From Macrostomum lignano (Eukaryota), in contig NIVC01001066.1 of assembly GCA_002269645.1 (NCBI GenBank), forward strand, positions 302,901-366,900: DNA of 64,000 bases, given 5' to 3'. Position numbers and translations under genes: made by a program. Below the pieces are notes generated by a model. The model searched no databases. It was not told where the DNA came from and saw nothing but the letters and a program-made list of their open reading frames with translations. Positions 3,001-41,551 of the stretch are shown piece after piece (position 1 is the stretch's first letter; each line of letters starts with the position of its first letter).

Positions 3001-6000
3001 CAGCAGCACTATCACCTACTCACTCTTACCTACGTCAATGTTCTACTCAAAACCCAAGCCAGAGACTCACCTGCATCCCAGTCAGAGTGACAGTGGCGAC
3101 CTTCTTAGCCGACTTTCTCTGCTGCTGCGGGTCGTCTAGCACGCGAACTAGCAGCACGTGTAATCGTGAAAAAGTCGCCTGCAGTTCGCTGCGAACTCCG
3201 GGCGCTTTAACTGCAGCTGAGGCAGCTGGCGGCTCTGAATCCTGACGGCCCCGGTTCTGCTGCTGCTTCTTTTTCTGTTGTTGCTCTTGGCTAGAAGCGG
3301 CAGCTTCAGCCGCGCGTCGCTCACCCTCCTTGGCGGCGTAAGTGTCTGCTGGGTTTATGCGCTTAGCAAAGCTTACTAGCTCTACCAGCGTCTTCTGATT
3401 GGCTGAAATGGTTAGGGTTATAATAAGTCAACACTCCACTCAGCTAGCTGCTCCACCCCACTCCGCCAACCATTCACTCCACCAACCCCCTTACTCCGCC
3501 AACAACCCCACTCCGCCAACCACCCCACTCCGCCAACCCCCTCACTCCGCCAACAACCCCACTCCGCCAAAAAACCCCACTTAGCCAACCCCTCACTCCG
3601 CCAACAACCCCACTCCGCCAACCACCCCACTTCGCCAACCCCCTCACTCCGCCAACCACCCCACTCCGCCAACCCCCTCACTCCGCCAACCACCCCACTC
3701 CGCCAACCCCCTCACTCCGCCAACCACTCCATCATCTGACCCAATATCAATCGCAGAAAAGAGACTGCCCAGCAAACGAAGGTCCAAACACATTCTAACC
3801 AATAATGTCCAACTCGGAGAAGTGCACGCCAATCCGTTGAACTGGACAGCCGCTGCCGCCGCCAGCACCAGCGGACTCGTCAATCCACTGATATGTGCAG
3901 TTGATAAGCGGCTCGCCCGGACCGGCTGTGGAGGCGGCAGCCGCCGCAGCGGCAACCTTTGGTCCAGCCGCAGTTGACAATGGCGGATGTTGCGGCTGCC
4001 TACGCCAGGGATTGAAGTCCGCCTCCGTTGGCGACTGCGGCGACGCCGGCGATTGCGGATTTGAAATGTTGATGCTGCCGGATACCGTCTCGATTCTGTG
4101 GGTTTTTATAGAAAATAAAGGTAAATTTTTTAATATGCTATTAACAGTAGGCAAGCAGCGAATATGCAATCAATTACTTGACGTCGCGATGCGAAGCCAC
4201 TAAAAGATCGAAATCCGGCCCCAGATTTGATAGAGCGTCGGCCACGATCAAAGAATTAATTGTTAGTTGAAACAGCTGCGTCTTTGGGCACAGAGTGTAC
4301 TGAGCTGTGCTCTGGCTTAGCGAGAACTCGGCCACTGGTCGGTCTGAAATGTGCAGCCAGGGTTTAATATTTCATTTTATGACCAAAGTAAAGCTAAACG
4401 GGACGATCTAAAAGGGAGGAGCTAAGCGGGAGAGTCTAAGCGGGAGAGTCTAAGCGGGAGAGTCTGAGCGGGAGAGTCTGAGCGGGAGAGTCTAAGCGGG
4501 AGAGTCTAAGCGGGAGAGTCTAAGCGGGAGAGTCTAAGCGGGAACTTCTAAGCGGGAGACTCTAAGCGGGAGACTCTAAGCGGGAGAGTCTAAGCGGGAG
4601 AAGCTAAGCGAGAGAAGCTAAGCGAGAGAGTTTAAGGGGGAGACTCTAAGCGGGAGGGTCTAAGCGGGAGGAACTAAGGGGGATAGTCTTAGTTGGAGGA
4701 TCTAAGCGGGAGGATCTAAGCGGGAGGAGCTAAGCGGGAGGAGCTAAGCGGGATGATCTAAGCGGGAGGAGCTAAGCGGGAGGAGCTAAGCGGGAGGAGC
4801 TAAGCGGGAGGATCTAAGCGGGAGGATATAAGCGGGAGGAGCTAAGCGAGAGGATCTAAGCGGGAGGATCTAAGCGGTAGGAGCTAAGCGGCAGGATCTA
4901 GGATCTAAGCGGGGGGATCTAAGCGGGAGGAGCTAAGCGGCAGGATCTAAGCGGGAGGAGCTAAGCGGGAGGATCTAAGCGGGGGGATCTAAGCGGGGGA
5001 TCTAAGCGGAGGATCTAAGCGGGAGGAGCTAAGCGGCAGGATCTAAGCGGCAGGATCTAAGCGGGATGATCTAAGCGGGAGGAGCTAAGCGGCAGGATCT
5101 AAGCGGCAGGATCTAAGCGGGAGGATCTAAGCGGCAGGATCTAAGCGGCAGGATCTAAGCGGGAGGAGCTAAGCGGGAGAATCTAAGCGGGAGGATCTAA
5201 GCGGGAGGAGCTAAGCGGCAGGATCTAAGCGGCAGGATCTAAGCGGGAGGATCTAAGCGGGAGGAGCTAAGCGGCAGGATCTAAGCGGCAGGATCTAAGC
5301 GGGAGGATCTAAGCGGGAGGAGCTAAGCGGGAGGAGCTAAGCGGCAGGATCTAAGCGGGAGGAGCTAAGCGGCAGGATCTAAGCGGGAGGAGCTAAGTGG
5401 GAGGATCTAAGCGGGAGGAGCTAAGCGGGATCTCGGTCTCACACCGAATAAAGATGCCAATAGAAGACGCAACCCACCGTCGCTCTCCAGCTGCACAATG
5501 AGCTGGTCAATGCTAAACAATGCGTCTACAAATTTAGCCAGCTCCTGAGTATCCATAGCGCTGGCGGTGGTGGACGATGATGCCGCGGCTGCCACAGCGG
5601 CGGCGGCGGCAGCAGCCGTCTCCGAGTCGGCGGCGGAGGCCGACGATGTCGGTCGATCGCGCGGCGCCCTCGGCGACGTTCGTGCAGCCGACTGCGCCGG
5701 CTTTGCCAGTCCGATGTCGCCTCCGCCTTCAGCGCCGCCGCCGCCGCCGCCGCCAACTGCTGACTGCAGATTCATGAGGCAGCGCTGCAGCCGGGTGATC
5801 TTACGATCGCTGGCCTGCAGCAGGAAGTGCGCCATACGGCCGAGCACTCGACAGCGGGGATAAACTGAGTCGCTGCCACGCAGCAGGCGGCGCTGCAGGC
5901 GGACTGTCACTGAGAATTTCTGCACCAAGCTGAGCTGCTCGCGCTGTCGCTGGGTAAGAGTTGCTGGTCTGGGAGAATTTGCAGTGGGGTTGGGAGATTT

Positions 6001-9000
6001 GAGTACGCTTCGGTAGGGGTAGCTCGTATTTGTAATGGACAGATCTGCTTCATAATGTTAGAGTAGCGTCAGTGTCTTAGTAATGTCATTTATCACAGTT
6101 TCATGTGTCACAGTGTCATGTATCACAGTGTCACAGTGTCTCAGTGTCACAGTGTCACAGTGTCTCAGTGTCACAGTGTCATGTGTCAGTGTCATGTGTT
6201 ACACAGTACCATGTGTAACAGTAACAGTGTCATGTGCCAAAGTGCAATGTACCACAGTCATGTAACAAGGTGCCATGTACCACAGTGTCATACATCAGGT
6301 GTCATGTATCACGTGTCATGTGTCACAGTGTCATGTATCACGTGTCATGTGTCACAGTGTCATGTATCACAGTGTCATTTATCACAGTGTCATGTATCAC
6401 AGTGTCATGTATCACAGTGTCATTTATCACAGTGCCATGTGTCACAGTGTCATGTATCACAGTTTCATGTGTCACAGTGTCATGTATCACAGTGTCATTT
6501 ATCACAGTGTCATTTATCACAATGCCATGTGTCACAGTGTCATGTATCACAGTTTCATGTGTCACAGTGTCATGTATCACAGTGTCATGTATCACAGTGT
6601 CATGTTTCACAGTGTCATTTATCACAGTGCCATTTATCACAGTGCCATGTGTCACAGTGTCATGTATCACAGTGTCATTTATCACAGTGTCATTTATCAC
6701 AGTGCCATTTATCACAGTGCCATGTGTCACAGTGTCATTTATCACAGTTTCATGTATCACAGTGTCATTTATCACAGTGTCATGTATCACAGTGTCATGT
6801 ATCACAGTTCCATGTATCACAGTGTCATGTATCACAGTGTCATGTGTCACAGTGTCATGTGTCACAGTGCCATGTATCACAGTGTCATTTATCACAGTTT
6901 CATGTATCACAGTTTCATGTATCACAGTGTCATGTATCACAGTGTCATGTATCACAGTGTCATGTATCACAGTGTCATGTATCACAGTGTCATGTGTCAC
7001 AGTGTCATGTATCACAGTGTCATGTGTCACAGTGTCATGTATCACAGTGTCATGTATCACAGTGTCATTTATCACAGTGTCATTTATCACAGTGCCATGT
7101 GTCACAGTGTCATGTATCACAGTTTCATGTGTCACAGTGTCATGTATCACAGTGTCATGTTTCACAGTGTCATGTATCACAGTGTCATGTGTCACAGTGT
7201 CATGTATCACAGTGTCATGTGTCACAGTGTCATGTATCACAGTGTCATGTATCACAGTGTCATGTATCACAGTGCCATGTATCACAGTGTCATGTGTCAC
7301 AGTGTCATGTGTCACAACACTCTTGCTCGCAAGAACCACAGTGCAAATCAGCAGCCCCAAGCGGAGCCCTAAGCCAATCCTCATTACCTGGCTTTTCCCG
7401 CAGCTTCAACAGCGGACTGGAACGGCACCAACTTGTTGACATCGGCAAAAGGACCAACTAAGATTTGCAGATCTCGCATCGCCAGCGAATAGGTCTCGTA
7501 GATTTTAGCTTCAATCGCGTCCGCGGCAGCGGCTGCGAGAGTTTCGTCGGTGGCAGCGGCGGCTTCAACGCATTCAGGCGGCGTAGAGCTCGGCGTTGCG
7601 AAGTCCTCATCGTCCGCGTCTTCCTCGTCGGCTGCAACGGCGCCGGTTGCGGTGGTGCTGACGGCGGCGGCTGTAGTGGGAGCCGTCGTAGAGGCTCGCA
7701 ACTCTGGCGAAGTGTTGACTAAATGCAAATGACCAAAGTCGAACAGCACAACTGGACTAGCTGGGTCCGTGAACTTCTCAGGCAGCAAAAATTGCGGCGC
7801 GCTGATGTTCAACTCCACCTCCCAGCGCTTGCCGTCAACCTGGGTTTGCATTGGATGAGCAGCTCAGGGCTGTGAGATTCTTGCTAATGAATAATTTAGT
7901 CACTAATTTGACGATTCTTTTAGTGACTAATTGGTGATTCTCACGTGACTAATTGGCGATTCTCAGGTGACTAATTGGCGATTCTCAGGTGACTAATTGG
8001 TGATTACTGTAGTGACTAATTGGTGATTCTCAGGTGACTAATTGGCGATTCTCAGGTGACTAATTGGTGATTACTGTAGTGACTAATTGGTGATTCTCAT
8101 GTGACTAATTGGTGATTCTCAGGTGACTAATTGGCGAATCTCAGGTGACTAATTGGCGAAACTCAGGTGATCGATTGGCGATTCTCAGGTGACTAATTGG
8201 CGATTCTCAGGTGACTAATCGGCAATTCTCATGTGACTAATCGGCGATTCTTGTAGTGATAAATAATAGCGATTCTCCATACCATAATAAAATAAAGGTC
8301 ATTCCCAACTCTCACCTGTCGATCTCCCCGCTGAATCTGATCGATCATCTCTTTGATGTTGGCGCGAGCATTTTCTCTGGCCCGATAGTACTTACGTCTG
8401 GCCGCGTCTGCAACATTTACAGCGGGGCCGCTTTGAGTTGGAGCGTGAGGGAATAATTTCAGCACTTGGTTTGTGGGTGCCGCTTCCCCACTGTGGGCAG
8501 TTCACAGAGGACACCCCCTCGGTTCACGCCGCTACCCGTCCGGCCCTCAGTACACTGCTATCCCCTCAGTGAACACCGCTTCCCCCTCAGTGGACACTGC
8601 TATCCTCTCAGTGAACACCGCTTCCCCTCAGTGGACACTGCTATTCTCTCAGTGGACACCGCTACCCCCTTCAGTGGACACTGCTATCCTCTCAGTGGAC
8701 ACTGCTATCCCCTCAGTGGACACCGCTACCACCTCAGTGGACACCGCTACCACCTCAGTGGACACCGCTTCCCCTCAGTGGACACTGCTATCCTCTCAGT
8801 GAACACCGCTTCCCCCTCAGTGGACACTGCTATCCTCTCAGTGGACACCGCTTCCCCCTCAGTGGACACTGCTATCCTCTCAGTGAACACCGCTTCCCCC
8901 TCAGTGGACACTGCTATCCTCTCAGTGGACACCGCTACCACCTCAGTGGACACCGCTACCCTCTCAGTGGACACCGCTACACCCTCAATGAACACCGCTA

Positions 9001-13094: not shown

Positions 13095-15769
13095 GACTTG
13101 TTCTTTAAGTAATATCCATGCAATAAATAAATGATTATTTTAAATTTTGTGTATATAAAGATGATATAAAAAGCAAAAAATATAATTTGAAAACTCTGAG
13201 TAAAAAACTATTAAAAATATATAGTTATCGCTACTTGTTAAATTTGCCATATATTCACTTGATTTGATTTATAATAGCTTAGATACTTATCAAATATTAA
13301 AGCCTAAGACTTATAATCAAAGAAAAATTATACTCTAGCTAAATTGTAATTATACCATTCTTAGAAGATATAGTAAAGTATTTAGTATAAGTGGATTTAT
13401 GTATTACTACTAGTCAATAAAACACGAAATCAATTTATTTTAATTTTTGCATATTTAAGTTTATATTTATGATAAAAATGACATTTTAGAAATCTAATAA
13501 ATCTTTTTTATTTACTTATGGCTATCCAAAACAAACATACTTTATATTAATTGGCAATGTTTAGGCCTACCTTCTATTTAATAGTGATATCAGTTTGAAT
13601 CAAATTAATGAATTTAATGAAATGAAATAAAAATATAAATTATATTAAACTGAAAAGGCGAGGCCTATATAGTTTTTCTATTAAGATAAACATAAGCATT
13701 TATTTCATGTATACTTTGGTTATTCACAAGTAATAAATTCAAACTATAAGACAGAACTGTTAATTCATTAGTAAATATTCTTCATTTTAACAAAAAGAGC
13801 ACACAGTATTTGTATATCATAGAATAATAAAAATTACTAATTGTTTAACAAGGCCTTTTCATATTGCTTATTCTGGTTCTAGAACCAGATCCAATTTGTA
13901 AAGTATAACTTTTTGTCTCCTAAACTAGAGGGATATTAGTGCTTTAAAGTTGTGATTATTGTATGGCAATAGCCAAGAAGAAAGTGAAAAATTGTGCAAA
14001 GTGAGGCTGTTAAGGCAGTTAAACATTCAAAAAAGTTAAATAGTTATACTGTTTTTTGGAAATCCGAACCGATTCTGGTTCTGGAATTGGTAATGTGAAA
14101 AGCCCTATAGTTACCATTTAAAAAATTATAGTAAAACGTGTGCATCGACTTTGTAATTGGCACCTATTCTGGATTTAAATAGGTAGATATTAAGTAAGGC
14201 TTTTTGTACCAAGAGCAAACGACCAATTTAATACAGTAGTGTAGTTCCTGTAGACAATAATCACGCAATGACAAAACTCTTTTCGTTGTTTTAAGTCTAA
14301 GAACATTGTATATTTTCATTGTTTTTAACTCGCGTTTATAATTCCTAACAGTTAAGAACACCAGAAATTACTTCTAATATATTTCGAAATTAAGATCATA
14401 AAGATAGTTATTCATCTTGTTCCTCATGCTTACAAAAGGACCAAGAGGTACTATTTTAAGTTGTTGAGCTTTTCTTAGATTTTTCTTGGAAAGTTTAAAA
14501 TTTTGTAAATTATTACATATTTTAACAAAAACTTCAATGTAAATTAAAAGTCAATACGTAAAAGTAATATATAAACTATGTTTTACTGTTTTTAATTTAC
14601 GGAGTCATTCACTTTTGAAATTAATTGCTTATTTACAGTTGTTGGGTAATACTTTAAGTATCGATTCTATTGATTCTATAGTACTTTCGGAACCAGAGCC
14701 AGTTGGATCCCCATATTTGTTTCTTCTCTTCTGGCTTTGTCGATCTAAACCAATGACCTTTTTCGTATTCTCGATTCCGGTTCAGAACCGAATCTATGTA
14801 GTGCATGCAGACTGTATGTCCGATCAATTGGATCGTCCATAAAATTACTCAACGGTTGGATATGGTACAATGTATATATAGTATTGGTATAGTTACAGCT
14901 GCATGTATCAGTGTACTTGTAACATCAAAATGAACATAAAGCCAGCTCTTAAAATCTATGGTATATGTATACCCTTAGTGAAACTCAGTACTTTTTCAGA
15001 CTGCAATTTGTTTTCTAAAATATGCTTTATGTATTATAAACAGGTGTTTAATATACATGTATTGCAAGCATTATGTACAACCTGTATACATGGGGACGTC
15101 GACAGTGCAAGAGTTGTCGCAAAAAAATTTGCTTACAGCGCAGGAGGTTCAAATGAGTGTTACAGCGACAGGTCATGTCCATGAAATTATAAGGACGTTA
15201 GAATTAAAGCTTGTCTGAGAAATTACTCTAGAGAAAGAATGGGCGCATGAGAAAATTGCGAATTGTGATTAGTTCTTCAGTTCCTTCAGTAAGCATTTAA
15301 ATAATATGAATACCGTAAAATGTATATGAACTCTCCTCTGAATTGGCTGGGACTGGGAGAAACGGGTACTGGACTAACATGTATAGATAGGCCAGCAAGT
15401 CCGAGTTAATATCCATTGTAATCCCGTTAGACCGTCCCTAAACGATCGCCATGCATATGCCATGTGAGAAATGACAATAAACAACTAAATTAATATTTGG
15501 TTGAATAATGTAATAGTAATGATAAAAAATCACTAATGTTAAACGCGTTTATTTAACATTTATTCATACATGTAAAATGTGAAAAACACGTTTCTGAATG
15601 CAGAATACGATTAAACGCAAGTCATGCAAAGATTTTAGAATGGACACGCATTTAGACAATGCAGAAACTTTTACAACTAGCTCGATCGATGATACATGAA
15701 ATTGCAAATGTATACTTTGTACAAAGGTTATTCAAGAGACTCAGTCCTTGAAGAATGTGCAGATGATGC

Positions 15770-17686
15770 TCAGTCGACCTCCTCAACGGTGGGTCCTCCA
15801 GCTCGCTGATGTCCAGGCTGAGGCTGACCAGACTGCTGCTGCTGCTGATGAAGCTTGGCCATGATTGGCGAGCAGCGGCTGCTGAGTTGCTGCTGCTGGT
15901 GGGCAATCTCGTCCTTCTCGGCAGTCTGGTTGTTCTCCAGCCAGGAAATCACTTGCTCGCAGGCGGCCACCACCTCGGCGGAGTCCTTCTCGCCCAGCTT
16001 GTCCTTGCAGTCGTTGGCAGCCTGCTTGTACTGGAAGGCGAGCGACTCGAGCTGGTTGCGGGCCGCCAGGCGCTCGCGGTGCCGCTCGTCCTCCTCGCGG
16101 AACTTCTCCGCATCCCGCACCATCCTGTCGATCTCGTCCTTCGAGAGGCGGCCCTTGTCGTTCGTGATCGTGATCTTCTCCTCCTTGCTGGTGCTCTTGT
16201 CTTTCGCCGACACCACCAGGATTCCGTTGGCGTCAACGTCGAAGGTCACCTCGATCTGAGGGACTCCGCGCGGCGCTGGCGGGATCCCGTCCAGGTTGAA
16301 CCGGCCCAGCAGGTGGTTGTCTCTGGTGAGCGCTCGCTCGCCCTCGAACACCTGCACCGTGACGCCGCTCTGGTTGTCCGAGTAGGTGGTGAACGTCTGC
16401 GTCGCCTTGGTCGGGATGCGGCTGTTCCGCTCGACAATCTTGGTCATCACCCCGCCGGCGGTCTCGATGCCGAGAGACAGCGGCGCCACATCCAGCAGCA
16501 GCAGGTCGTCGATCTTGTCGTCCTTCACGCCAGTCAGCACCGCAGCCTGCACGGCAGCTCCGTAGGCGACCGCCTCGTCCGGGTTGATCGACTTGTTCAG
16601 CGTCCAACCGCCCATGAATTCTTGCAGCAACTTCTGCACCCTCGGGATCCGGGTTGATCCGCCAACCAGCACGATCTCGTTGATGTTGCTCTTGTCCATC
16701 TTGGCGTCTCTCAGCGCTCGCTCCACCGGCTCCATCGTCTGGCGAAACAGGTCGGCGCACAGCTCCTCGAATCGAGCCCTGGTGACGCTCGTGTAAAAAT
16801 CGATGCCCTCGAACAGCGAGTCAATCTCGATGCTCGCCTGTGCCGAGCTGCTCAGCGTTCGCTTCGCTCGCTCAGCCGCAGTCCGAAGGCGTCTCACAGC
16901 CCGAGCGTTGCCGCTCATGTCCTTGCGGTACTTGCGCTTGAACTCTTGCATCAGGTGCTCAACCAGACGATGATCAAAGTCCTCGCCGCCGAGGTGGGTG
17001 TCGCCGGCGGTTGCGCGCACCTCGAACATGCTGCCCTCCGACACTGTCAGGATGGACACGTCGAACGTGCCGCCTCCCAGGTCAAAGATGAGAATGTTCT
17101 TCTCACCCTGCAGGTTCTTGTCCAGACCGTAGGCCAGTGCCGCAGCAGTCGGCTCGTTCACGATGCGCAGCACGTTCAGTCCGGCAATCGCCCCGGCATC
17201 CTTCGTTGCCTGTCGCTGACTGTCGTTGAAGTAGGCCGGCACTGTGATCACCGCGTCAGACACCTTCTCGCCGAGGTAGGCCTCCGCCGTCTCCTTCATC
17301 TTGGTGAGAACCATGGCGGAGATCTCCTCCGGGTAGAAGCTGCGCCTCTCGCCCATGTACTGCACCTCAATCTTGGGTCGGCCTCCGTCGTTCGTCACCT
17401 TGAATGGCCACAGCTTCATGTCCCTCTGCACCGTCTCGTCTCCGAACTTTCGTCCGATCAGACGCTTCGCGTCAAACACCGTGTTGTCCGGATTCATCGC
17501 CACCTGGTTCTTTGCAGCGTCGCCTACCAGCCTCTCCGTGTCCGTGAAGGCCACGTAGCTGGGAGTGGTTCGGTTGCCCTGGTCATTTGCAATGATCTCC
17601 ACTTTGCCTGCCTGGAACACGCCAACGCACGAGTACGTGGTGCCCAGGTCAATGCCGATTGCAGGTCCGTTGTTGCTCTTACCCAT
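15770..17686 (-). CDS. hsp70: Inducible cytosolic heat shock protein 70 (638 aa, intronless), left copy
   Basis: Hsp70 signatures [22 protein letters not shown] and [11 protein letters not shown]; C-terminal GPTVEEVD; upstream HSEs. Confidence 0.98.
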
Positions 17687-17843
17687 GTTGTCGATCGATT
17701 AATTCGCACTTGCTTGATATACGAGTAGTAGCGTAGGCTGATGCGTCTGTTGCCTTGATGGCTTGCTTGGCTTTGCTGTTCGTTTCGTTCGCCTTGCGAT
17801 CCGATTTCAATTCTTGCCTCCAATTCTGGGCCGGGTGCTTCTC

Positions 17844-17939
17844 TTTTATAGACTCCGGCCCGTTTCTAGAAGTTTCCCGCACCATCCTCCGCGAATGCGC
17901 CGCGAGCTATTTTTAGCTCGTTCTGGAAATTTCTCGAAA
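17844..17939 (-). promoter_or_regulatory. hsp70 promoter: TATA box (17844-17850) and two heat-shock elements (17863-17877, 17920-17939)
   Basis: Reverse complement of TATAAAA; arrays of 3 and 4 alternating nGAAn/nTTCn pentamers. Confidence 0.9.
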
Positions 17940-18352
17940 AAAGAATTGCTTGACAAATTTTACCGTTTGCGTCTATTTCGCCTACTTTAAGTAGAAAGTA
18001 ACAAACCTGTAGTCTAATATTCTTACAAACATATTTACAATGTTGAATGAATCAAGAAATCCTGTGGAAAATGGGGTTAACGAATATTAACGATCGTTTT
18101 GGTAGCAAAGAATTCATTTTGTTATTCAATATTTATTTGTTAAAACAATCAGGTCTTTCAGATTAACTGATTCTGGAAATCGGCGATATGTATAGAACAA
18201 GCATTGCAAGCACAAAACAAAAGTCAGAAAAGTGCTATGTTTTAAAGCCGACTCAATCTTCTGAAGTGAAACAAAAAGAAAATACAAACAGTTAGTCATT
18301 TTAATATAATTTTTTAGTTAGTGCTTATTGGAAGTGCACAAAACAAAATGGC

Positions 18353-18358
18353 AAAAAA
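18353..18358 (-). terminator. Pol III oligo-T terminator of the left 5S gene
   Basis: A6 on the plus strand right at the 5S 3' end. Confidence 0.8.
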
Positions 18359-18476
18359 GACAACAGCATTTGGTATTCCCAGGCGGTCACCCATCCAAGT
18401 ACTAACCAAACCCAACGTTGCTTAACTTCGGTGATCAGACGAGAACCGGTGTTTTCAACGTGGTATGGCCGTTGCC
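18357..18476 (-). rRNA. 5S rRNA: 5S rRNA gene, left arm
   Basis: Reverse complement of the 19440-19559 copy; followed by T6 on the minus strand (18353-18358). Confidence 0.95.
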
Positions 18477-18678
18477 AATTACCGAGAGCACTCAACTTCA
18501 ATTTATACTTCGCTACCGCCGCATTTGTGTCAGCAGGCAATACGTAACGTAAGTAATATGGCCCATTTTGTATCGACCAAGAGCCAATAGCCTCCTCGCC
18601 TTATCGGGATGATGAATATCCAATCCTGACCAACTGACCAATCTTTAATTGATATTTCTCTCTGCGTTGAATCGACAA

Positions 18679-19238
18679 TCAGATAATGACAGTCATATAA
18701 TGACAGTCAGATAACAACAGCCAGATAATGACAGTCAGATAATGGCATTCAGATAATGACAGTCAGATAATGACAGTCAGATAGTGACAGTCATATAATG
18801 ACAGTCAGATAGTGACAGTCAGATAGTGACAGTCATATAATGACAGTCAGATAGTGACAGTCAGATAGTGACAGTCATATAATGACAGTCAGATAGTGAC
18901 AGTCAGATAATGACAGTCAGATAGTGACAGTCAGATAGTGACAGTCAGATAGTGACAGTCAGATAATGACAGCCAGATAATGAAAGAATGAAAGATAATG
19001 AAAGATAATGCTGTTGTCATTATCTGGCTGTCATTATCTGACTGTCACTATCTGACTGTCACTATCTGACTGTCACTATCTGACTGTCATTATCTGACTG
19101 TCACTATCTGACTGTCATTATATGACTGTCACTATCTGACTGTCATTATCTGACTGTCATTATCTGAATGCCATTATCTGACTGTCATTATCTGGCTGTT
19201 GTTATCTGACTGTCATTATATGACTGTCATTATCTGAT
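18679..19238. repeat. 14-bp minisatellite (GACAGTCAGATAAT/GACAGTCAGATAGT)n forming the palindrome axis; orientation flips at ~18983-19016
   Basis: The left array (~300 bp) and right array (~220 bp) are reverse complements with unequal copy number. Confidence 0.92.
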
Positions 19239-19439
19239 TGTCGATTCAACGCAGAGAGAAATATCAATTAAAGATTGGTCAGTTGGTCAGGATTGGATAT
19301 TCATCATCCCGATAAGGCGAGGAGGCTATTGGCTCTTGGTCGATACAAAATGGGCCATATTACTTACGTTACGTATTGCCTGCTGACACAAATGCGGCGG
19401 TAGCGAAGTATAAATTGAAGTTGAGTGCTCTCGGTAATT

Positions 19440-19559
19440 GGCAACGGCCATACCACGTTGAAAACACCGGTTCTCGTCTGATCACCGAAGTTAAGCAACG
19501 TTGGGTTTGGTTAGTACTTGGATGGGTGACCGCCTGGGAATACCAAATGCTGTTGTCTT
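19440..19559 (+). rRNA. 5S rRNA: 5S rRNA gene, right arm
   Basis: GGCAACGGCCATACCACGTTGAAAACACCGGTTCTCGTCTGATCACCGAAGTTAAGC...GGATGGGTGACCGCCTGGGAATACCAAATGCTGTTGTCTT. The 5' GGCAACGGC pairs with the 3' GCTGTTGTC (helix I). Box A/box C are recognisable, a TATA-like TATAAAT lies at -31 (19409-19415), and T6 follows. Confidence 0.96.
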
Positions 19560-19563
19560 TTTT
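19558..19563 (+). terminator. Pol III oligo-T terminator of the right 5S gene
   Basis: T6 right at the 5S 3' end. Confidence 0.8.
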
Positions 19564-19994
19564 GCCATTTAGTTTTGTGCACTTAATTAAGCATTAACTA
19601 AAAAATTATTCAACTGACAAGCTGTTTGTATTTTCCTTTTGTTTCACTTCAGAAGATTGAGTCGACTTTAAAACATAGCACTGTTCTGAATTTTGTTTTG
19701 TGCTTGCAATGCTTGTTCTATTTCTATACATATCGCCGATTTCCAGAATCAGTTAATCTGAAAGACCTGATCGTTTTAACAAATAAATATTGAATAACAA
19801 AATAAATTCTTCGCAACCAAAACTATCGCTAATATTCATTAATCCCATTTTCCACAGAATTTCTTGATCCCTTTAGGTTTTAACATTGTAAATATGTTTG
19901 TAAGAATATGTTTGTATTAGACTACACGTTTGTTACTTTCTACTTAAAGTAGGCGAAATAGACGCAAATGGTAAAATTTGTCAAGCAATTCTTT

Positions 19995-20090
19995 TTTCGA
20001 GAAATTTCCAGAACGAGCTAAAAATAGCTCGCGGCGCATTCGCGGAGGATGGTGCGGGAAACTTCTAGAAACGGGCCGGAGTCTATAAAA
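19995..20090 (+). promoter_or_regulatory. hsp70 promoter: HSEs (19995-20014 TTTCGAGAAATTTCCAGAAC; 20057-20071 GGAAACTTCTAGAAA) and TATAAAA (20084-20090)
   Basis: Perfect alternating nTTCn/nGAAn pentamers and a canonical TATA box. Confidence 0.9.
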
Positions 20091-20247
20091 GAGAAGCACC
20101 CGGCCCAGAATTGGAGGCAAGAACTGAAATCGGATCGCAAGGCGAACGAAACGAACAGCAAAGCCAAGCAAGCCATCAAGGCAACAGACGCATCAGCCTA
20201 CGCTACTACTCGTATATCAAGCAAGTGCGAATTAATCGATCGACAAC

Positions 20248-22164
20248 ATGGGTAAGAGCAACAACGGACCTGCAATCGGCATTGACCTGGGCACCACGTA
20301 CTCGTGCGTTGGCGTGTTCCAGGCAGGCAAAGTGGAGATCATTGCCAATGACCAGGGCAACCGAACCACTCCCAGCTACGTGGCCTTCACGGACACGGAG
20401 AGGCTGGTAGGCGACGCTGCAAAGAACCAGGTGGCGATGAATCCGGACAACACAGTGTTTGACGCGAAGCGTCTGATCGGACGAAAGTTCGGAGACGAGA
20501 CGGTGCAGAGGGACATGAAGCTGTGGCCATTCAAGGTGACGAACGACGGAGGCCGACCCAAGATTGAGGTGCAGTACATGGGCGAGAGGCGCAGCTTCTA
20601 CCCGGAGGAGATCTCCGCCATGGTTCTCACCAAGATGAAGGAGACGGCGGAGGCCTACCTCGGCGAGAAGGTGTCTGACGCGGTGATCACAGTGCCGGCC
20701 TACTTCAACGACAGTCAGCGACAGGCAACGAAGGATGCCGGGGCGATTGCCGGACTGAACGTGCTGCGCATCGTGAACGAGCCGACTGCTGCGGCACTGG
20801 CCTACGGTCTGGACAAGAACCTGCAGGGTGAGAAGAACATTCTCATCTTTGACCTGGGAGGCGGCACGTTCGACGTGTCCATCCTGACAGTGTCGGAGGG
20901 CAGCATGTTCGAGGTGCGCGCAACCGCCGGCGACACCCACCTCGGCGGCGAGGACTTTGATCATCGTCTGGTTGAGCACCTGATGCAAGAGTTCAAGCGC
21001 AAGTACCGCAAGGACATGAGCGGCAACGCTCGGGCTGTGAGACGCCTTCGGACTGCGGCTGAGCGAGCGAAGCGAACGCTGAGCAGCTCGGCACAGGCGA
21101 GCATCGAGATTGACTCGCTGTTCGAGGGCATCGATTTTTACACGAGCGTCACCAGGGCTCGATTCGAGGAGCTGTGCGCCGACCTGTTTCGCCAGACGAT
21201 GGAGCCGGTGGAGCGAGCGCTGAGAGACGCCAAGATGGACAAGAGCAACATCAACGAGATCGTGCTGGTTGGCGGATCAACCCGGATCCCGAGGGTGCAG
21301 AAGTTGCTGCAAGAATTCATGGGCGGTTGGACGCTGAACAAGTCGATCAACCCGGACGAGGCGGTCGCCTACGGAGCTGCCGTGCAGGCTGCGGTGCTGA
21401 CTGGCGTGAAGGACGACAAGATCGACGACCTGCTGCTGCTGGATGTGGCGCCGCTGTCTCTCGGCATCGAGACCGCCGGCGGGGTGATGACCAAGATTGT
21501 CGAGCGGAACAGCCGCATCCCGACCAAGGCGACGCAGACGTTCACCACCTACTCGGACAACCAGAGCGGCGTCACGGTGCAGGTGTTCGAGGGCGAGCGA
21601 GCGCTCACCAGAGACAACCACCTGCTGGGCCGGTTCAACCTGGACGGGATCCCGCCAGCGCCGCGCGGAGTCCCTCAGATCGAGGTGACCTTCGACGTTG
21701 ACGCCAACGGAATCCTGGTGGTGTCGGCGAAAGACAAGAGCACCAGCAAGGAGGAGAAGATCACGATCACGAACGACAAGGGCCGCCTCTCGAAGGACGA
21801 GATCGACAGGATGGTGCGGGATGCGGAGAAGTTCCGCGAGGAGGACGAGCGGCACCGCGAGCGCCTGGCGGCCCGCAACCAGCTCGAGTCGCTCGCCTTC
21901 CAGTACAAGCAGGCTGCCAACGACTGCAAGGACAAGCTGGGCGAGAAGGACTCCGCCGAGGTGGTGGCCGCCTGCGAGCAAGTGATTTCCTGGCTGGAGA
22001 ACAACCAGACTGCCGAGAAGGACGAGATTGCCCACCAGCAGCAGCAACTCAGCAGCCGCTGCTCGCCAATCATGGCCAAGCTTCATCAGCAGCAGCAGCA
22101 GTCTGGTCAGCCTCAGCCTGGACATCAGCGAGCTGGAGGACCCACCGTTGAGGAGGTCGACTGA
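20248..22164 (+). CDS. hsp70: Inducible cytosolic heat shock protein 70 (638 aa, intronless), right copy
   Basis: Protein identical to the left copy in the ORF track; C-terminal EEVD; AATAAA signals at ~22370-22386. Confidence 0.98.
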
Positions 22165-22608
22165 GCATCATCTGCACATTCTTCAAGGACTGAGTCTCTT
22201 GAATAACCTTTGTACAAAGTATACATTTGCAATTTCATGTATCATCGATCGAGCTAGTTGTAAAAGTTTCTGCATTGTCTAAATGCGTGTCCATTCTAAA
22301 ATCTTTGCATGACTTGCGTTTAATCGTATTCTGCATTCAGAAACGTGTTTTTCACATTTTACATGTATGAATAAATGTTAAATAAACGCGTTTAACATTA
22401 GTGATTTGTTATCATTACTATTACATCATTTAAATAAATAATAATTTAGTTGTTTATTGTCATTTCTCACATGGCATATGCATGGTATGTGCGATCGTTT
22501 AGGGACGGTCTAATGGGATTACATGGCTTAGACAAATAGCTTCTTGCCTATCCCCATTTCCCCGTATTCCCATCGCAGTACAAGCTAGGTGTAAAGCTTC
22601 GACTAAAG

Positions 22609-23516
22609 CTACTTGGACCGATTGGACAGATTCTCTCCGATTGTCTCCATCGACTGTTCCCAGTTCTGGCCATCGAAGTGCTCCCAGACTAACTGGCTGA
22701 CGGTGTCCGGCCGCAGGCAGTGCACATTGATGCCGTAGCCGTCCGGATTGGATCTGGGCGTGTAGAAACTCTGCACTCCGCACCTGGCGCAGAACGTGTG
22801 TTTGGCTGCGTGCGTGTTGAAGGTGTAAGTTGTTAAACAGTCGGAGCCCGTCAGCAGGGTGAAGTGGCTGGCTGGCACAATGAAATGATCATTGCCTTTC
22901 ATGCTGCATACTGAGCAAGAGCATTTGATGACATTGATCACTGCCGGTGCCCTTACTGTGAAGGTCACGGCACCGCAGTGGCAGCCGCCGTGATGAGTCA
23001 CCAGCTCGGCCTTGTCCTTGTTGTCGGGATGAGGCGGTTGGGAACAGCGGAATTTATAGCTGCTGTACACTACTTTAATGAGGTTGTCATGCACTGTAGT
23101 ATTAATGCAGTGGACAGCTACCCTTACCTTCTAGCCAATTCGGTGGACAGCTACCCTACCATCTAGTCAATTCGGTAGACAGCTACCCTACCTTCTAGTC
23201 AATGCTGTGGACAGCTACCTTACCTTCTAGTCAATGCAGTGGACAGCTACCCTACCTTCTAGTCAATTCGGTAGACAGCTACCCTACCTTCTAGTCAATG
23301 CTGTGGACAGCTACCCTACTTTCTAGTCAATTCGTTAGACAGCTACCCTACCTTCTAGTCAATTCGTTAGACAGCTACCCTACCTTCTAGTCAATGCTGT
23401 GGACAGCTACCCTACCTTCTAGTCAATTCGGTGGACAGCTACCCTACCTTCTAGTCAATTCGGTGGACAGCTACCCTACCTTCTAGTCAATGCTGTGGAC
23501 AGCTACCCTCCTGCAT
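22609..23516 (-). CDS. CENPV: CENP-V-like / GFA-family zinc-binding protein
   Basis: Main exon 22609-23093: HHGGCHCGAV..CSCSVCSMKG..HFIVP..YTFNTHAAKHTFCARCGVQSFYTPRSNPDGYGINVHC. The ORF starts at GTG with no in-frame ATG before the domain. Proposed micro-exon 23507-23516 (ATGCAGGAGG|gtagct) splices in phase 1 to the acceptor at 23093; this 5' model is tentative. Confidence 0.8.
23107..23508. repeat. 32-bp minisatellite (GTGGACAGCTACCCTACCTTCTAGTCAATGCT)n
   Basis: Tandem units fill the proposed CENP-V intron. Confidence 0.92.
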
Positions 23517-24180
23517 TGTTGCCTTTGAGATAAAAGAAGATTTAATTAAACAAAACCTGTTGTTTAACAAAATAGTTCACAGTGTACTGCAATTCAAAAT
23601 AGTTTCGGTCGTATAATTTAATGTAAGGGTCTATAAGTGGCTAAGTAATATACAATGAAAGCAAACTTGATAAATAAACAAATACAATAGAAGGCTTATT
23701 TAAAAAAACAATGGTCACTTTAGCAGAGACAGATGAGTCAGGATGGAAAAAGAATGAAACAAATGATTATTTTGGCTAAAATATGTTCCTCGTTAGTGTC
23801 AGTGAGGATCAGCTGATTGTAAAAGGATTGGTAAAACCTAATAAAATGTAGTTTAGCAGCCAGTAAACATCAGCACTATTCTGGGAGTAGTAAATATGGC
23901 CATGATTAATTGATGCTAAACACCTTACTACTGTTCAGTAGTATAAAAAGCAAACAATTAGCAAACACAACAGAAAGATGTAGTTTGAAAAATGGCACAA
24001 AAACCCCATAATTTTTAGTCATTATCGAATCAATAGTTGAAAGACATTTACGGGATAATTTCAGCAATACAAGGAAAAAGTGGGAATTCCACCGCTGTAA
24101 AAGGTAGCGACCTATTATTTCTTAGAAATGAGATTGGTTGATAACACTAGAAGCAGCAGCAGAAGGCCGCACTGCAGTCT

Positions 24181-27100: not shown

Positions 27101-28664
27101 CTAACTGCAAACTAACAGGTTCGGTTACGGGGGGGGGGGCAGGTAAGCTGATCTTGTCGCAGCCCCTTGCACACGGGGCACAAGGCATAGTATAGGCTGC
27201 TAGGGCTCTATTTCTGCCAAATTCGAGACAAAATTAACTATATTGATAATTGCTGTAAACTCTGCTTCAGCCGGCGGAATTTCCTTAGAGTTTCTTAGAC
27301 TCCTGAGAATTAATTTGTTAATTTCAAGCTTTATGCGCTAACGGAAACAGGAGTATTGCCCAATAACTGTGATATAAAAAACCCTCTGTAAAATTCGATC
27401 TTGAAAAGATTATTCAAAAACGAGTAAATAAAGCTTAATAGTATACAAATTGTAAAGAGTTGAAAAGGATATGCAACATCACAACAGTGAGCAAAAATGG
27501 TGTCTGTATTAGTGCCTGTATTAGTGCCTGTATTAGTGTCTGTATTAGTGCCTGTATTAGTGTCTGTATTAATGCCTGTATTAATGCCTGTATTAGTGTC
27601 TGTATTAATGCCTGTATTAATGCCTGTATTAGTGTCTGTATTAGTGTCTGTATTAGTGTCTGTATTAGTGCCTGTATTAATGCCTGTATTAGTGTCTGTA
27701 TTAGTGTCTGTATTAGTGCCTGTATTAGTGTCTGTATTAGTGCCTGTATTAGTGTCTGTATTAGTGTCTGTATTAGTGCCTGTATTAGTGCCTGTATTAG
27801 TGCCTGTATTAGTGTCTGTATTAGTGCCTGTGTTAGTGTCTGTATTAGTGTCTGTATTAGTGCCTGTATTAGTGTCTGTATTAGTGTCTGTATTAGTGCC
27901 TGTATTAGTGTCTGTATTAGTGCCTGTATTAGTGTCTGTATTAGTGTCTGTATTAGTGTCTGTATTAGTGCCTGTATTAGTGTCTGTATTAGTGTCTGTA
28001 TTAGTGTCTGTATTAGTGTCTGTATTAGTGTCTGTATTAGTGCTTGTATTAGTGCCTGTATTAGTGTCTGTATTAGTGCCTGTATTAGTGTCTGTATTAG
28101 TGCCTGTATTAGTGTCTGTATTAGTGCCTGTGTTAGTGTCTGTATTAGTGTCTGTATTAGTGCCTGTATTAGTGCCTGTATTAGTGCCTGTATTAGTGTC
28201 TGTATTAGTGCCTGTATTAGTGCCTGTATTAGTGCCTGTATTAGTGTCTGTATTAGTGTCTGTATTAGTGCCTGTATTAGTGTCTGTATTAGTGCCTGTA
28301 TTAGTGTCTGTATTAGTGTCTGTATTAGTGCCTGTATTAGTGCCTGTATAGAGTTACAGGCAAAACTGCTCACTCTGAATTAGTTTTACACTGCATTAAA
28401 ATATTGGCAATACGGGCCCGTAGGCTCTAGCATAACAAAAAAACACAAAGCAATTAATTGACAGAAATTACAGCAGCAATGTCATATACTCGTACATAAA
28501 TAGCAGCTAATTAACGGAACTTCCACGGAATTTCCATGCACACACGCCACACTCTTGCTCACCGCCTCTAAAGTCTGCTGAATGCACTGCTCGCTAAATT
28601 CTGGATACTCGGCTCGGAGCTGACGCTCAGCGCTCTGCCTGTCTGTCTGATGACGTTGCGTCAT
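24181..28664 (-). CDS. TAB2/TAB3-like ubiquitin-binding adaptor (N-terminal CUE, C-terminal NZF/RanBP2 zinc finger), ~331 aa
   Basis: Phase-consistent exons 28563-28664, 25636-25882, 24954-25388, 24181-24392. The spliced N-terminus LRAEYPEFSEQCIQQTLEA|HEFSLSRCREALNQL is CUE-like, and the last exon has WHCQRCTFANHPDLLECEMC (NZF). Confidence 0.72.
24471..24836 (+). mobile_element. tRNA-derived SINE-like element, antisense in the last intron of the TAB2/3-like gene
   Basis: A-box-like TAGCCCAGTGG (24483-24493), B-box-like GGCTCGATTCC (24527-24537), internal hairpin CCTTGAGGG-CCAA-CCCTCAAGG, A-rich end. Confidence 0.55.
26010..26782. repeat. 34-bp minisatellite (GACACAGGTGAATCCAGAATCTGGAGTCCTAGCT)n
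   Basis: Tandem units in intron 1 of the TAB2/3-like gene. Confidence 0.95.
27503..28350. repeat. 12-bp minisatellite (TGTATTAGTGYC)n
   Basis: About 70 units of two main variants; source of the CISA/LIQT/VLVS ORFs. Confidence 0.95.
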
Positions 28665-39300: not shown

Positions 39301-39799
39301 TATTCCTTCTCGATTATACTGAGTTTAACAAGCTCAAAGAACGCATTGAAATTGTAAATAAACAACTTTAAACTGAATCAAAAATATATTTGTTAGTTAG
39401 TTGCTTCCTTCATTGTTATTTTGCATCGTTTTTGAGCTTTTTGTTTCTTGTAGACCCAAATTTTGGTCGGTCACTGAACAAAGATTAGTAGTGTGTAATG
39501 TTTTCTTACTATATTTACTTTTCTATCCGCATCTAGTTTTTGTCTAAATTATTTAATTACAACTATTTGTATTCTCAACTAAGTCCATATCTCTCGACTT
39601 AGTTTGATGGAACAATTGAAAATATTAAAGACTTTATATATTTTAAATAAAGGACTTATTAAACAGATTTTTTAACATCCAATTTAATGATAATTAGCAA
39701 TTGGGGCACCGTTCACTCGCCTTTATCGATATTTCGCTATTCGTATTGTGTCGCAAAAATCAATTTAACAGGGATTTCTTTGAAAAACTACCAAATTTG

Positions 39800-41075
39800 T
39801 GGGGGTGACTGGGACTGGATCTCGTGAACGGGTGTGGGTCACTGGGATTGGATACCGTGAACGGGTGTGGGTCACTGGGATTGGATACCGTGAACGGGTG
39901 TGGGTCACTAGGATTGGATACCGTGAACGGGTGTGGGTCACTGGGATTGGATACCGTGAACGGGTGTGGGTCACAGGGATTGGATACCGTGAACGGGTGT
40001 GGGTCACAGGGATTGGATACCGTGAACGGGTGTGGGTCACTGGGATTGGATACCGTGAACGGGTGTGGGTCACAGGGATTGGATACCGTGAACGGGTGTG
40101 GGTCACTGGGATTGGATACCGTGAACGGGTGTGGGTCACTGGGATTGGATACCGTGAACGGGTGTGGGTCACTGGGATTGGATACCGTGAACGGGTGTGG
40201 GTCACAGGGATTGGATACCGTGAACGGGTGTGGGTCACAGGGATTGGATACCGTGAACGGGTGTGGGTCACAGGGATTGGATACCGTGAACGGGTGTGGG
40301 TCACAGGGATTGGATACCGTGAACGGGTGTGGGTCACTGGGATTGGATACCGTGAACGGGTGTGGGTCACTGGGATTGGATACCGTGAACGGGTGTGGGT
40401 CACTGGGATTGGATACCGTGAACGGGTGTGGGTCACTAGGATTGGATACCGTGAACGGGTGTGGGTCACAGGGATTGGATACCGTGAACGGGTGTGGGTC
40501 ACAGGGATTGGATACCGTGAACGGGTGTGGGTCACAGGGATTGGATACCGTGAACGGGTGTGGGTCACTGGGATTGGATACCGTGAACGGGTGTGGGTCA
40601 CTGGGATTGGATACCGTGAACGGGTGTGGGTCACTAGGATTGGATACCGTGAACGGGTGTGGGTCACTGGGATTGGATACCGTGAACGGGTGTGGGTCAC
40701 TGGGATTGGATACCGTGAACGGGTGTGGGTCACTAGGATTGGATACCGTGAACGGGTGTGGGTCACAGGGATTGGATACCGTGAACGGGTGTGGGTCACT
40801 GGGATTGGATACCGTGAACGAGTGTGGGTCACTGGGATTGGATACCGTGAACGGGTGTGGGTCACTGGGATTGGATACCGTGAACGGGTGTGGGTCACAG
40901 GGATTGGATACCGTGAACGGGTGTGGGTCACTGGGATTGGATACCGTGAACGGGTGTGGGTCACTGGGATTGGATACCGTGAACGGGTGTGGGTCATAGG
41001 GATTGGATACCGTGAACGGGTGTGGGTCACTAGGATTGGATACCGTGAACGGGTGTGGGTCACATGGATTGGATC
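39800..41075. repeat. 33-bp G-rich minisatellite (GTGAACGGGTGTGGGTCACTGGGATTGGATACC)n, ~38 copies
   Basis: Highly homogeneous tandem array between convergent genes; source of four 390-450 aa spurious ORFs. Confidence 0.97.
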
Positions 41076-41551
41076 CCGTGGAAGGGGTGTATGCTTCGAC
41101 AAAACAAAACACAAAGCTTTGTCGAAAAAGTAAAATTGAAAACTATTTTTTTAAACCGAAGTAGGTTAGCTCAGAGCCAATATTGCACAGCAATTGTATT
41201 TTACAGTTGATCCCACCAGCACCAATTTTTGTTAATTATATTGTTGGTGAAGCAATTAGTTTGAAACCAGCTTTTCTAACGATTTAGGTATTGAAGAAAA
41301 ATTAATTTATTACTTTTCCTACATTTATGGAATCGATTCTGCATTACATGTAGACGACGGACTATGCACTAAAATGATTAAATTACGGTAGAGATATGCG
41401 CTTTTGCTACTTGTTTATAGCGAGACTATTTATAAGTAGCTTTACAGAATATAGCTAGAATATTTTATTTTGAAACAATAAACGATAATCAATTTCTAGC
41501 CAACTCAGTCTAAAGTCAGAAGGTCTTGGATTCGATCCCCCCCGCCCCGGG

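Follow-up and report, generated by a model that had tools for sequence, protein, structure and literature searches.

The 64-kb window of Macrostomum lignano DNA (the whole stretch analysed here) contains, at positions 15413-22526, a 7.1-kb near-perfect palindrome in which two hsp70 genes lie back to back, each with a complete 5S rRNA gene about 0.7 kb (-690) upstream, as revealed by a pair of inverted repeats (I1/I2) and the arm-to-arm alignment. From the centre outward, each arm carries a 14-bp minisatellite, a TATA-like box, the 5S gene, T6, the spacer, HSEs, a TATA box and hsp70 (Table 1). Within an arm the 5S and hsp70 genes are co-oriented, the 5S gene being placed between the hsp70 promoter and the repetitive centre; its 3' end is separated from the distal HSE by 437 nt (right) or 419 nt (left), which puts a Pol III gene ~0.5 kb upstream of the hsp70 TATA box. 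From start codon to start codon the hsp70 pair is separated by 2561 bp, within which lie two complete 5S genes and an inverted minisatellite. This is the anatomy claimed in the preliminary description, and in our structural check all of its elements were found in place in both arms. The layout "5S in each arm" is thus correct, but the two arms descend from a single duplication and therefore represent one linkage event, not two, so that the second arm is a copy and not a replication of the first.

Table 1. Positions of the features of the 5S-hsp70 palindrome in the window
Feature	Position	Strand	Description
Whole palindrome	15413..22526	.	two ~3.55-kb arms, symmetry centre near 19010
Left hsp70 CDS	15770..17686	-	638 aa, intronless; ORF list
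Left hsp70 promoter (mirror)	17843..17938	-	HSEs 17921-17938, 17864-17876; TATA 17843-17850
Left 5S rRNA gene	18358..18476	-	RF00001; identical to right copy
Central 14-bp minisatellite	18674..19242	.	TRF; orientation flips near 19010
Three CCAAT boxes	19274..19332	-	59 bp, inverted relative to 5S, -112 to -166; mirror 18584-18642
TATAAAT, -31 to -25 of right 5S	19409..19415	+	mirror 18501-18507; sequence
Right 5S rRNA gene	19440..19558	+	119 nt; RF00001 full length
T6 Pol III terminator, right 5S	19558..19563	+	mirror A6 at 18353-18358; sequence
Right unconverted AT-rich spacer	19571..19927	+	mirror 18007-18345; 21 substitutions, 5 indels between arms
Right hsp70 promoter	19996..20091	+	distal 4-unit HSE 19996-20013, proximal 3-unit HSE 20058-20070, TATAAAAG 20084-20091
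Right hsp70 CDS	20248..22164	+	638 aa, intronless; ends GPTVEEVD

The two Hsp70 proteins are identical to each other and match the Pfam family PF00012 with 848.5 bits over profile positions 1-597 of 599; this full-length domain and the terminal EEVD are the marks of a cytosolic Hsp70. Their best protein matches are from M. lignano (92-96% identity); they equal the UniRef entry A0A1I8I8J9 of this species except for R361W, an unusual change shared by both copies; their 5'UTR, when translated, agrees with an M. lignano entry at 68 of 68 residues. A dipteran origin was rejected on these grounds. A 92%-identical hsp70 paralog of M. lignano is represented by P0008/P0018. All six matches to GAAnnTTCnnGAA in the window (0.81 expected) fall within the two hsp70 promoters, where TATAAAAG follows 14 nt downstream of the HSEs. 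To judge from HSEs adjoining a TATA box, hsp70 is presumably a classical HSF-driven Pol II gene. In the main text of a preprint on heat-shock RNA-seq in M. lignano, comparing 2 h at 37 with 20 degrees C (10.1101/2024.12.18.629116), hsp70 is not mentioned.

The two 5S genes are the only ones in the window, and both were identified by cmscan (RF00001; score 116.5 bits, gathering score 38; model covered from position 1 to 120 of 120). The alignment contains no non-canonical pairs in the helices, all of which can form, the MFE fold is the canonical three-way junction (-40.5 kcal/mol), and comparison with the 5S consensus shows a conserved internal-control region. Directly 3' of the gene, where we took at least four T as a terminator, there are six. 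An intact gene, a TATA-like box at -30 and T6 are the features needed for Pol III transcription, which the 5S copies thus appear to carry. We found no tRNAs in the window, and searches for further ncRNAs in 14000-24000 gave only sub-threshold chance matches. The CCAAT cluster and the minisatellite, which the preliminary description listed in each arm, are present but weaker than implied, as neither is distinctive against the background. Similar CCAAT triplets occur outside tandem repeats at 47742 and 49630, hence the cluster is not statistically distinctive, and we rejected it as a meaningful promoter module. The minisatellite, with ~22 copies on the left (18674-18983) and ~16 on the right (19015-19242) according to TRF, is one of ~35 arrays of this kind in the window and can therefore be regarded as genome background.

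The palindrome is surrounded by VPS13-like, GFA-domain and RhoGAP gene fragments, and no other copies of any part of it were found in the window. We also considered a foldback-type transposon: the inverted arms and inverted subrepeats of such an element are present, but it lacks a target-site duplication, and the candidate was rejected. The bases immediately beyond the arm ends differ (agttaatat at 15404-15412 vs cttagacaa at 22527-22535).

Differences between the arms are distributed very unevenly. The 5S block has none in 467 nt and the hsp70 block 4 in 2480, vs 21 substitutions in 357 nt (5.9%) and 5 indels in the spacer between them; the profile of 5S block, spacer and hsp70 block is significant by Fisher's test (p = 1.7e-8 and 5.8e-16). 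Near-identical blocks on both sides of a diverged spacer point to an old inverted duplication with later conversion of both units, and the hsp70 pair, with 4/2480 differences vs 21/357 in the spacer, behaves as expected of an inverted pair undergoing conversion. Within hsp70 there are 2 synonymous differences vs 26.4 expected (P = 1.3e-9), the 3'UTR shows 0/243 (P = 6e-7), and the region upstream of 5S together with the minisatellite 0/336 (P = 2.6e-9), so that purifying selection alone is insufficient to explain the identity. The comparison of the arms thus demonstrates, at the level of the DNA sequence, that conversion has repeatedly homogenised both transcription units. The 5S tract comprises the gene with ~340 nt upstream of it and reaches 7 nt beyond the T-run; that of hsp70 runs from 68 nt before the distal HSE through the 3'UTR. 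Alternatively, tract edges so close to the unit edges could be due to selection acting on the two units, and hence to a functional 5S gene. Short-read polishing of the long-read assembly could also have inflated the identity of the arms.

The main 5S rDNA of M. lignano is a tandem array, seen by FISH as a single terminal cluster on chromosome MLI2p and amplified as a 1645-bp fragment; the authors allow for a few copies at other sites (PMC5704211). Primers published for M. lignano 5S (PMC7013459) match the 5S gene of the window exactly, so the two kinds of 5S are the same at both primer sites (positions 3-21 and 26-46). On the window gene these primers face outward, and the only product predicted there is 1005 bp long and primed by 5SR at both ends, in contrast to the 1645-bp fragment of the main cluster. 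Unlike the latter, the pair described here is divergent, not tandem, and there are only two copies in 64 kb. Since the main 5S genes form the tandem cluster on MLI2, we regard the window pair as dispersed copies among ordinary genes.

A full-text literature search found no paper that links 5S genes with hsp70 loci or describes a 5S-hsp70 unit, in agreement with the preliminary description, whose author knew of none. In the window the unit occurs as one palindromic pair only, and all comparison loci are from outside Macrostomum. There is no 5S gene near hsp70 at the loci of the parasitic flatworms Schistosoma mattheei, Hymenolepis diminuta and Schistocephalus solidus, nor at five metagenomic loci that extend 1.6 kb or more upstream of the gene. 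A metagenome scan found 5S absent from 80 of 80 hsp70 loci, mostly transcripts, of which only 7 had at least 800 nt upstream. The closest relatives from outside M. lignano, L001 and L002 (Hsp70 identity 85% and 84%), are uninformative on linkage because their upstream sequences (422 and 145 nt) stop short of -690. A search with the Hsp70 N-terminus gave no match above 84% identity, and one with an ORF spanning the 5S gene gave 401 spurious "5S proteins" of other organisms, none from Macrostomum. Exact look-ups of the hsp70 product, of the spurious 5S-spanning ORFs of 73 and 41 aa, and of two promoter-crossing ORFs returned no record.

Inverted hsp70 pairs are familiar from Diptera, namely the hsp70Aa/Ab pair at 87A7 of Drosophila melanogaster and the divergent pairs of Anopheles and Aedes. 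As in M. lignano, two intronless, HSE/TATA-driven genes diverge there from a short shared intergenic region, and the copies are held almost identical by gene conversion. To our knowledge, however, no 5S gene has been described in a dipteran hsp70 pair, whereas the 2561-bp intergenic region of the flatworm pair holds two of them and the inverted minisatellite; as the locus comes from the flatworm Macrostomum lignano, the comparison is one of analogy only. Genes for 5S rRNA are known to be embedded in histone, spliced-leader RNA and snRNA repeats and in 45S rDNA units. There too a full 5S gene, promoter and terminator included, lies beside an unrelated gene and has been co-duplicated with it, but those repeats are tandem, comprise tens to hundreds of units and are often conserved across species, while the M. 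lignano locus is one palindromic pair whose partner gene is hsp70. One paper names the shared chromosomal location of 5S rDNA and H3 histone clusters in its title (PMC3234176). A composite tandem repeat, L003 (ENA ERZ25070786 ctg139317c), contains full-length 5S (115-116 bits) repeated together with LanC-like and DDAH-like ORFs; unlike our palindrome, it is arranged head-to-tail in 3879-bp units, and its partner genes are other than hsp70. Pol III boundaries and tethers, i.e. tDNA/TFIIIC insulators and the nucleolar association of 5S (PMC3261910), resemble the locus in that a Pol III gene lies within ~0.5 kb of a Pol II promoter, a setting for which effects of this kind have been reported. They differ in that the effect published for 5S is one of repression and that 5S genes rely on TFIIIA and a C-box, not on the B-box of the tDNA insulators; the M. 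lignano locus is characterised here by its sequence.

We consider it rather probable that a dispersed 5S gene came to lie beside hsp70, that one inverted duplication and conversion followed, and that the units are independent and their adjacency accidental. A solitary 5S gene from outside the main array would have arrived ~0.7 kb upstream of an intronless hsp70 gene, itself presumably heat-inducible; 5S unit, spacer and hsp70 unit may then have been duplicated once, in inverted orientation, to give the 7.1-kb palindrome. Since then, arm-to-arm conversion has homogenised the 5S and hsp70 units, and the spacer has drifted by ~6% and acquired indels. Each unit most likely acts independently, and the adjacency would be a historical accident carried along by the duplication, with no regulatory device involved. 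The preliminary description had proposed that co-duplication lets 5S spread with the hsp70 family; the composite shared by the arms bears this out for one inverted duplication and for nothing beyond it. The fact that the 5S genes are intact despite the age of the duplication, as seen from the spacer, counts against an accident. An unlikely reading is that the 5S copies are silent relics, orphons kept intact only by conversion from the other arm or from the main array, which would neither supply 5S rRNA nor affect hsp70. The MLI2p cluster is the main 5S supply, and the complete identity of the arms (0/336) runs through the neutral minisatellite, which speaks for recent conversion and not for selection on 5S; on the other hand, the 5S gene has its full length, none of its helices is disrupted, and it retains its -30 TATA-like box and T6 terminator, and because conversion between two copies fixes disabling mutations as readily as it removes them, long-term intactness suggests some constraint. 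That the palindrome is an artefact of assembly, a chimeric long-read fold-back in a genome with one 5S-hsp70 arm or none, is highly improbable. Near-perfect palindromes are a known artefact of long reads, and no independent contig spanning 5S and hsp70 was retrieved. Fold-back arms, however, would differ only by random read errors, which would not cluster, whereas all 21 substitutions and 5 indels are clustered in the spacer, and this confinement argues against an artefact. The copy number of the minisatellite is moreover unequal, the arms differ at their 3' ends, and a gene model from an older, independent M. lignano assembly has this hsp70 and its 5'UTR as well.

We regard as unlikely, too, a functional coupling in which the 5S gene, occupied by TFIIIA, TFIIIC and Pol III, serves as a boundary, a nucleosome-phasing or an open-chromatin element, or in which heat shock modulates 5S; the 5S pair flanking the centre of the palindrome would then shield either hsp70 promoter from the other and maintain both in a poised state. 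It would agree with the orderly geometry of the locus, where each hsp70 promoter has one 5S gene in the same orientation, 419-437 nt from the distal HSE, with the homogenisation of both units but not of the spacer, and with the fact that 5S rDNA is a classical nucleosome-positioning sequence. TFIIIC-bound Pol III genes have been reviewed as insulators (PMC11346459). Insulator evidence in general, however, comes mostly from B-box tDNAs and not from 5S genes. Human HSP70 was reported to bind 5S rRNA and tRNA and to be present at Pol III loci (preprint 10.1101/2023.04.10.536203). In the one direct experiment that we found, by contrast, nucleolar tethering by ectopic 5S rDNA led to repression of a linked reporter, the opposite of poising (PMC3261910). 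The linkage moreover goes back to a single independent event, the hsp70 loci of the three other flatworms are without 5S, and no feature of the sequence connects the two promoters; nor does the sequence lend support to the poising, insulation or co-regulation proposed in the preliminary description. It is likewise unlikely that 5S and hsp70 form a composite module conserved within Macrostomum, one that would recur at further hsp70 loci or homeologs and in related species of the genus, with a Pol III-bound 5S gene as built-in boundary or tether. In such a module, 5S would shield the promoter from the repeat-rich surroundings so that it stays inducible, or would keep the locus at the nucleolar periphery, from which heat shock would release it. 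As working transgenesis and heat-shock reporters exist for M. lignano (PMC6371448), a test of coupling is feasible.

In practice, the Pol III gene ~0.5 kb upstream of the TATA box needs to be borne in mind when the hsp70 promoter of M. lignano is cloned to drive inducible transgenes. If the locus is a co-duplicated accident, it is an example of dispersed 5S copies spreading by hitch-hiking and of conversion that homogenises separate functional blocks and skips the spacer between them. Were the linkage to prove conserved and to have a function, it would amount to a natural experiment on cross-talk between Pol III and Pol II at a classic inducible promoter, and a conserved module would offer a natural case in which a stress gene has co-opted 5S as a cis-regulatory element.

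The preliminary description of a palindromic 5S/hsp70 cassette proved correct in every element of its anatomy, since the inverted repeat, both 5S genes with their T6 runs and TATAAAT boxes, the heat-shock elements (HSEs) and the hsp70 ORFs were all located as described. The only RNA genes that Rfam searches identified in the 64-kb window are two full-length 5S rRNA genes (gathering score 38 bits). The two copies are identical in sequence, match all positions of the model with no non-canonical pairs, and are predicted to fold into the canonical three-way junction; nhmmer searches of the 64 kb with this 5S sequence found no further copies or fragments. Each gene has TATAAAT upstream, at -31 to -25; a TATA-like box at about -30 is an established upstream element in many invertebrate and fungal 5S genes. 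Farther upstream (-112 to -166) lie three CCAAT boxes in inverted orientation, a cluster that is present as reported but is not distinctive, as equally tight triplets occur at two other sites in the window outside tandem repeats. The two hsp70 ORFs encode identical proteins with a complete Hsp70 domain (848 bits) and a C-terminal EEVD, and both are preceded by the same set of a four-unit HSE, a three-unit HSE and TATAAAAG. All six matches to GAAnnTTCnnGAA in the 64 kb (0.81 expected) fall within the two hsp70 promoters. Judged from its sequence, the locus carries two intact 5S genes, each with the signals expected for Pol III, and two canonical heat-shock promoters.

Features of the palindrome and its surroundings (window positions; the three arm zones are from the arm-to-arm alignment, in right-arm coordinates)
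Feature	Position	Strand	Remark
Whole inverted repeat	15413-22526		symmetry centre ~19010
Left hsp70 ORF	15770-17686	-	638 codons, uninterrupted
Left 5S rRNA gene	18358-18476	-	Rfam 116.5 bits
Right 5S rRNA gene	19440-19558	+	Rfam 116.5 bits
T6 directly 3' of right 5S	19558-19563	+	left mirror 18353-18358
Four-unit HSE, right hsp70 promoter	19996-20013	+	
Three-unit HSE, right hsp70 promoter	20058-20070	+	
TATAAAAG, right hsp70 promoter	20084-20091	+	
Right hsp70 ORF	20248-22164	+	638 codons, uninterrupted
GFA (glutathione-dependent formaldehyde-activating enzyme) domain ORF	22609-23094	-	~80 bp past right-arm end, convergent with right hsp70
5S unit (part of minisatellite, upstream region, gene, to 7 nt past T-run)	19104-19570		0 differences / 467 nt
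AT-rich spacer	19571-19927		21 substitutions + 5 indels / 357 nt
hsp70 unit (68 nt upstream of distal HSE through 3'UTR)	19928-22407		4 differences / 2480 nt
Example minisatellite arrays	452-1365, 4394-5430, 6084-7316, 27500-28349, 39799-41090, 57487-58425		

The central minisatellite (14-bp period, ~22 copies versus ~16 between the arms) was likewise confirmed, but not as a cassette-specific element: it is one among ~35 separate arrays in window 1-64000 (periods 12-59 bp, each up to ~1.3 kb), and is a trait of this genome, not a property of the cassette. Several of these arrays yield long spurious ORFs on both strands, and the "pentapeptide repeat" Pfam match at 6103-7461, which overlaps the 15-bp repeat array 6084-7316, is probably just that array in translation. 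The sub-threshold match to the miRNA precursor MIR1520 at the palindrome centre (18939-19053, 33 bits versus 53) most likely just reflects that the inverted minisatellite can form hairpins.

Divergence between the arms falls into three zones, the spacer differing from both the 5S unit and the hsp70 unit (Fisher p = 1.7e-8 and 5.8e-16). At the 5.9% divergence of the spacer, the CDS should carry 26.4 synonymous differences but has two (P = 1.3e-9); there are none at all in the 3'UTR (0/243 nt, P = 6e-7) or in the 5S upstream region with minisatellite (0/336 nt, P = 2.6e-9). Purifying selection alone does not account for these deficits, and both units have been homogenised between the arms. The simplest history would be that a segment already holding 5S, spacer and hsp70 was long ago duplicated in inverted orientation, and that gene conversion recurred over two tracts matching the two transcription units. 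A fold-back assembly chimera could also produce a palindrome, and is strongly argued against by the three-zone pattern and the unequal minisatellite copy numbers, while short-read polishing could have exaggerated the identity of the arms. A foldback transposon was rejected, as there is no target-site duplication at the arm ends and no other copy within the window. Residue 361 is Trp in both hsp70 copies (TGG, 21328-21330 and its left-arm mirror); P0010, the closest relative, and the UniRef models of M. lignano carry Arg there, and P0011 and P0013 carry Lys. This unusual substitution, R361W, is either a strain polymorphism that conversion has spread or a mistake of assembly or polishing.

Modelling gaps aside, UniRef A0A1I8I8J9 (P0017) is identical to the window Hsp70 except for R361W, and its spurious N-terminus matches the translated window 5'UTR at 68/68 positions, which identifies it, by sequence, as a wrongly modelled form of this same gene. 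Public models of M. lignano hsp70 (P0008, P0017, P0018) are mis-built, with translated upstream UTR, small false introns and unrelated N-terminal exons fused; two of them, P0008 and P0018, stand for a paralog of 92% identity. The primers 5SF and 5SR published for M. lignano 5S (PMC7013459) have perfect matches in the window 5S (positions 26-46 and 3-21, respectively), where they face outward. By FISH, the same authors mapped the 5S rDNA of this species to one cluster, located terminally on chromosome MLI2p, and with these primers amplified it as a 1645-bp fragment, with the caveat that a few copies elsewhere may have gone undetected (PMC5704211). The only product predicted from the window is 1005 bp, with 5SR priming both ends, and the neighbourhood consists of ordinary gene fragments (a VPS13-like exon, the GFA-domain ORF, RhoGAP); the window 5S genes are thus dispersed copies outside the main array. 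The left-arm flank is AT-rich and holds no ORF of at least 100 aa.

No 5S gene was found at the hsp70 loci of Schistosoma mattheei (L084) and Schistocephalus solidus (L086), at the hsp90-hsp70 locus of Hymenolepis diminuta (L085), or at five metagenomic loci where 1.6-9.7 kb lies upstream of hsp70; contigs of the closest relatives had upstream sequence too short to count. The arrangement is therefore not general in flatworms or metazoans, among outgroups that include no Macrostomum. Homology searches for further loci returned no Macrostomum matches, and neither the hsp70 product nor any of four spurious ORFs over the 5S gene and hsp70 promoter matched a record in exact-sequence look-ups. The S. 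mattheei family (OX103947.1, L084 1-31436) is tandem, with three or more co-oriented hsp70 genes in 31 kb, in contrast to the inverted pair of M. lignano; that locus also has two mir-3492 family matches.

We consider it probable that the units act independently, the 5S gene being a hitch-hiking dispersed copy that by chance came to adjoin hsp70 and was then duplicated with it, each unit functioning on its own. Co-duplication, as originally proposed, is borne out, one inverted duplication having carried both genes. The long-term intactness of the 5S copies and their retained upstream box suggest competence for transcription, on which arm-to-arm identity is uninformative because it runs on through neutral sequence. 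Regulatory coupling of 5S and hsp70, which the preliminary description proposed, seems unlikely. TFIIIC-bound Pol III genes have been reviewed as insulators (PMC11346459), human HSP70 binds 5S rRNA and Pol III loci according to a preprint (10.1101/2023.04.10.536203), and the edges of the conversion tracts lie near those of the units; against this, the sole direct experiment found, a 5S gene placed beside a Pol II reporter, gave nucleolar tethering and repression (PMC3261910), the promoters share no connecting sequence feature, and the 5S gene in each arm, both arms stemming from one duplication, counts as a single linkage event seen twice.

Inverted hsp70 pairs of Diptera are divergent, intronless and homogenised by conversion, and the M. 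lignano pair resembles them in all three respects, while its 5S genes resemble others that join gene families and duplicate with them. A further instance of 5S repeated together with protein-coding genes is a head-to-tail repeat (ENA ERZ25070786 ctg139317c, L003 1-11184) whose 3879-bp unit holds a full-length 5S (115-116 bits) and LanC-like and DDAH-like ORFs. A 5S-linked repeat family would be marked by recurrence of its unit; the M. lignano window contains one palindromic pair. A literature search found no published account of 5S adjoining hsp70. The locus, which rests on a single event and whose likeliest explanation is ordinary, is neat and easy to test in a transgenic model; given that the search found no such adjacency described, hsp70 looks like a new partner in a known phenomenon, not a new kind of system.
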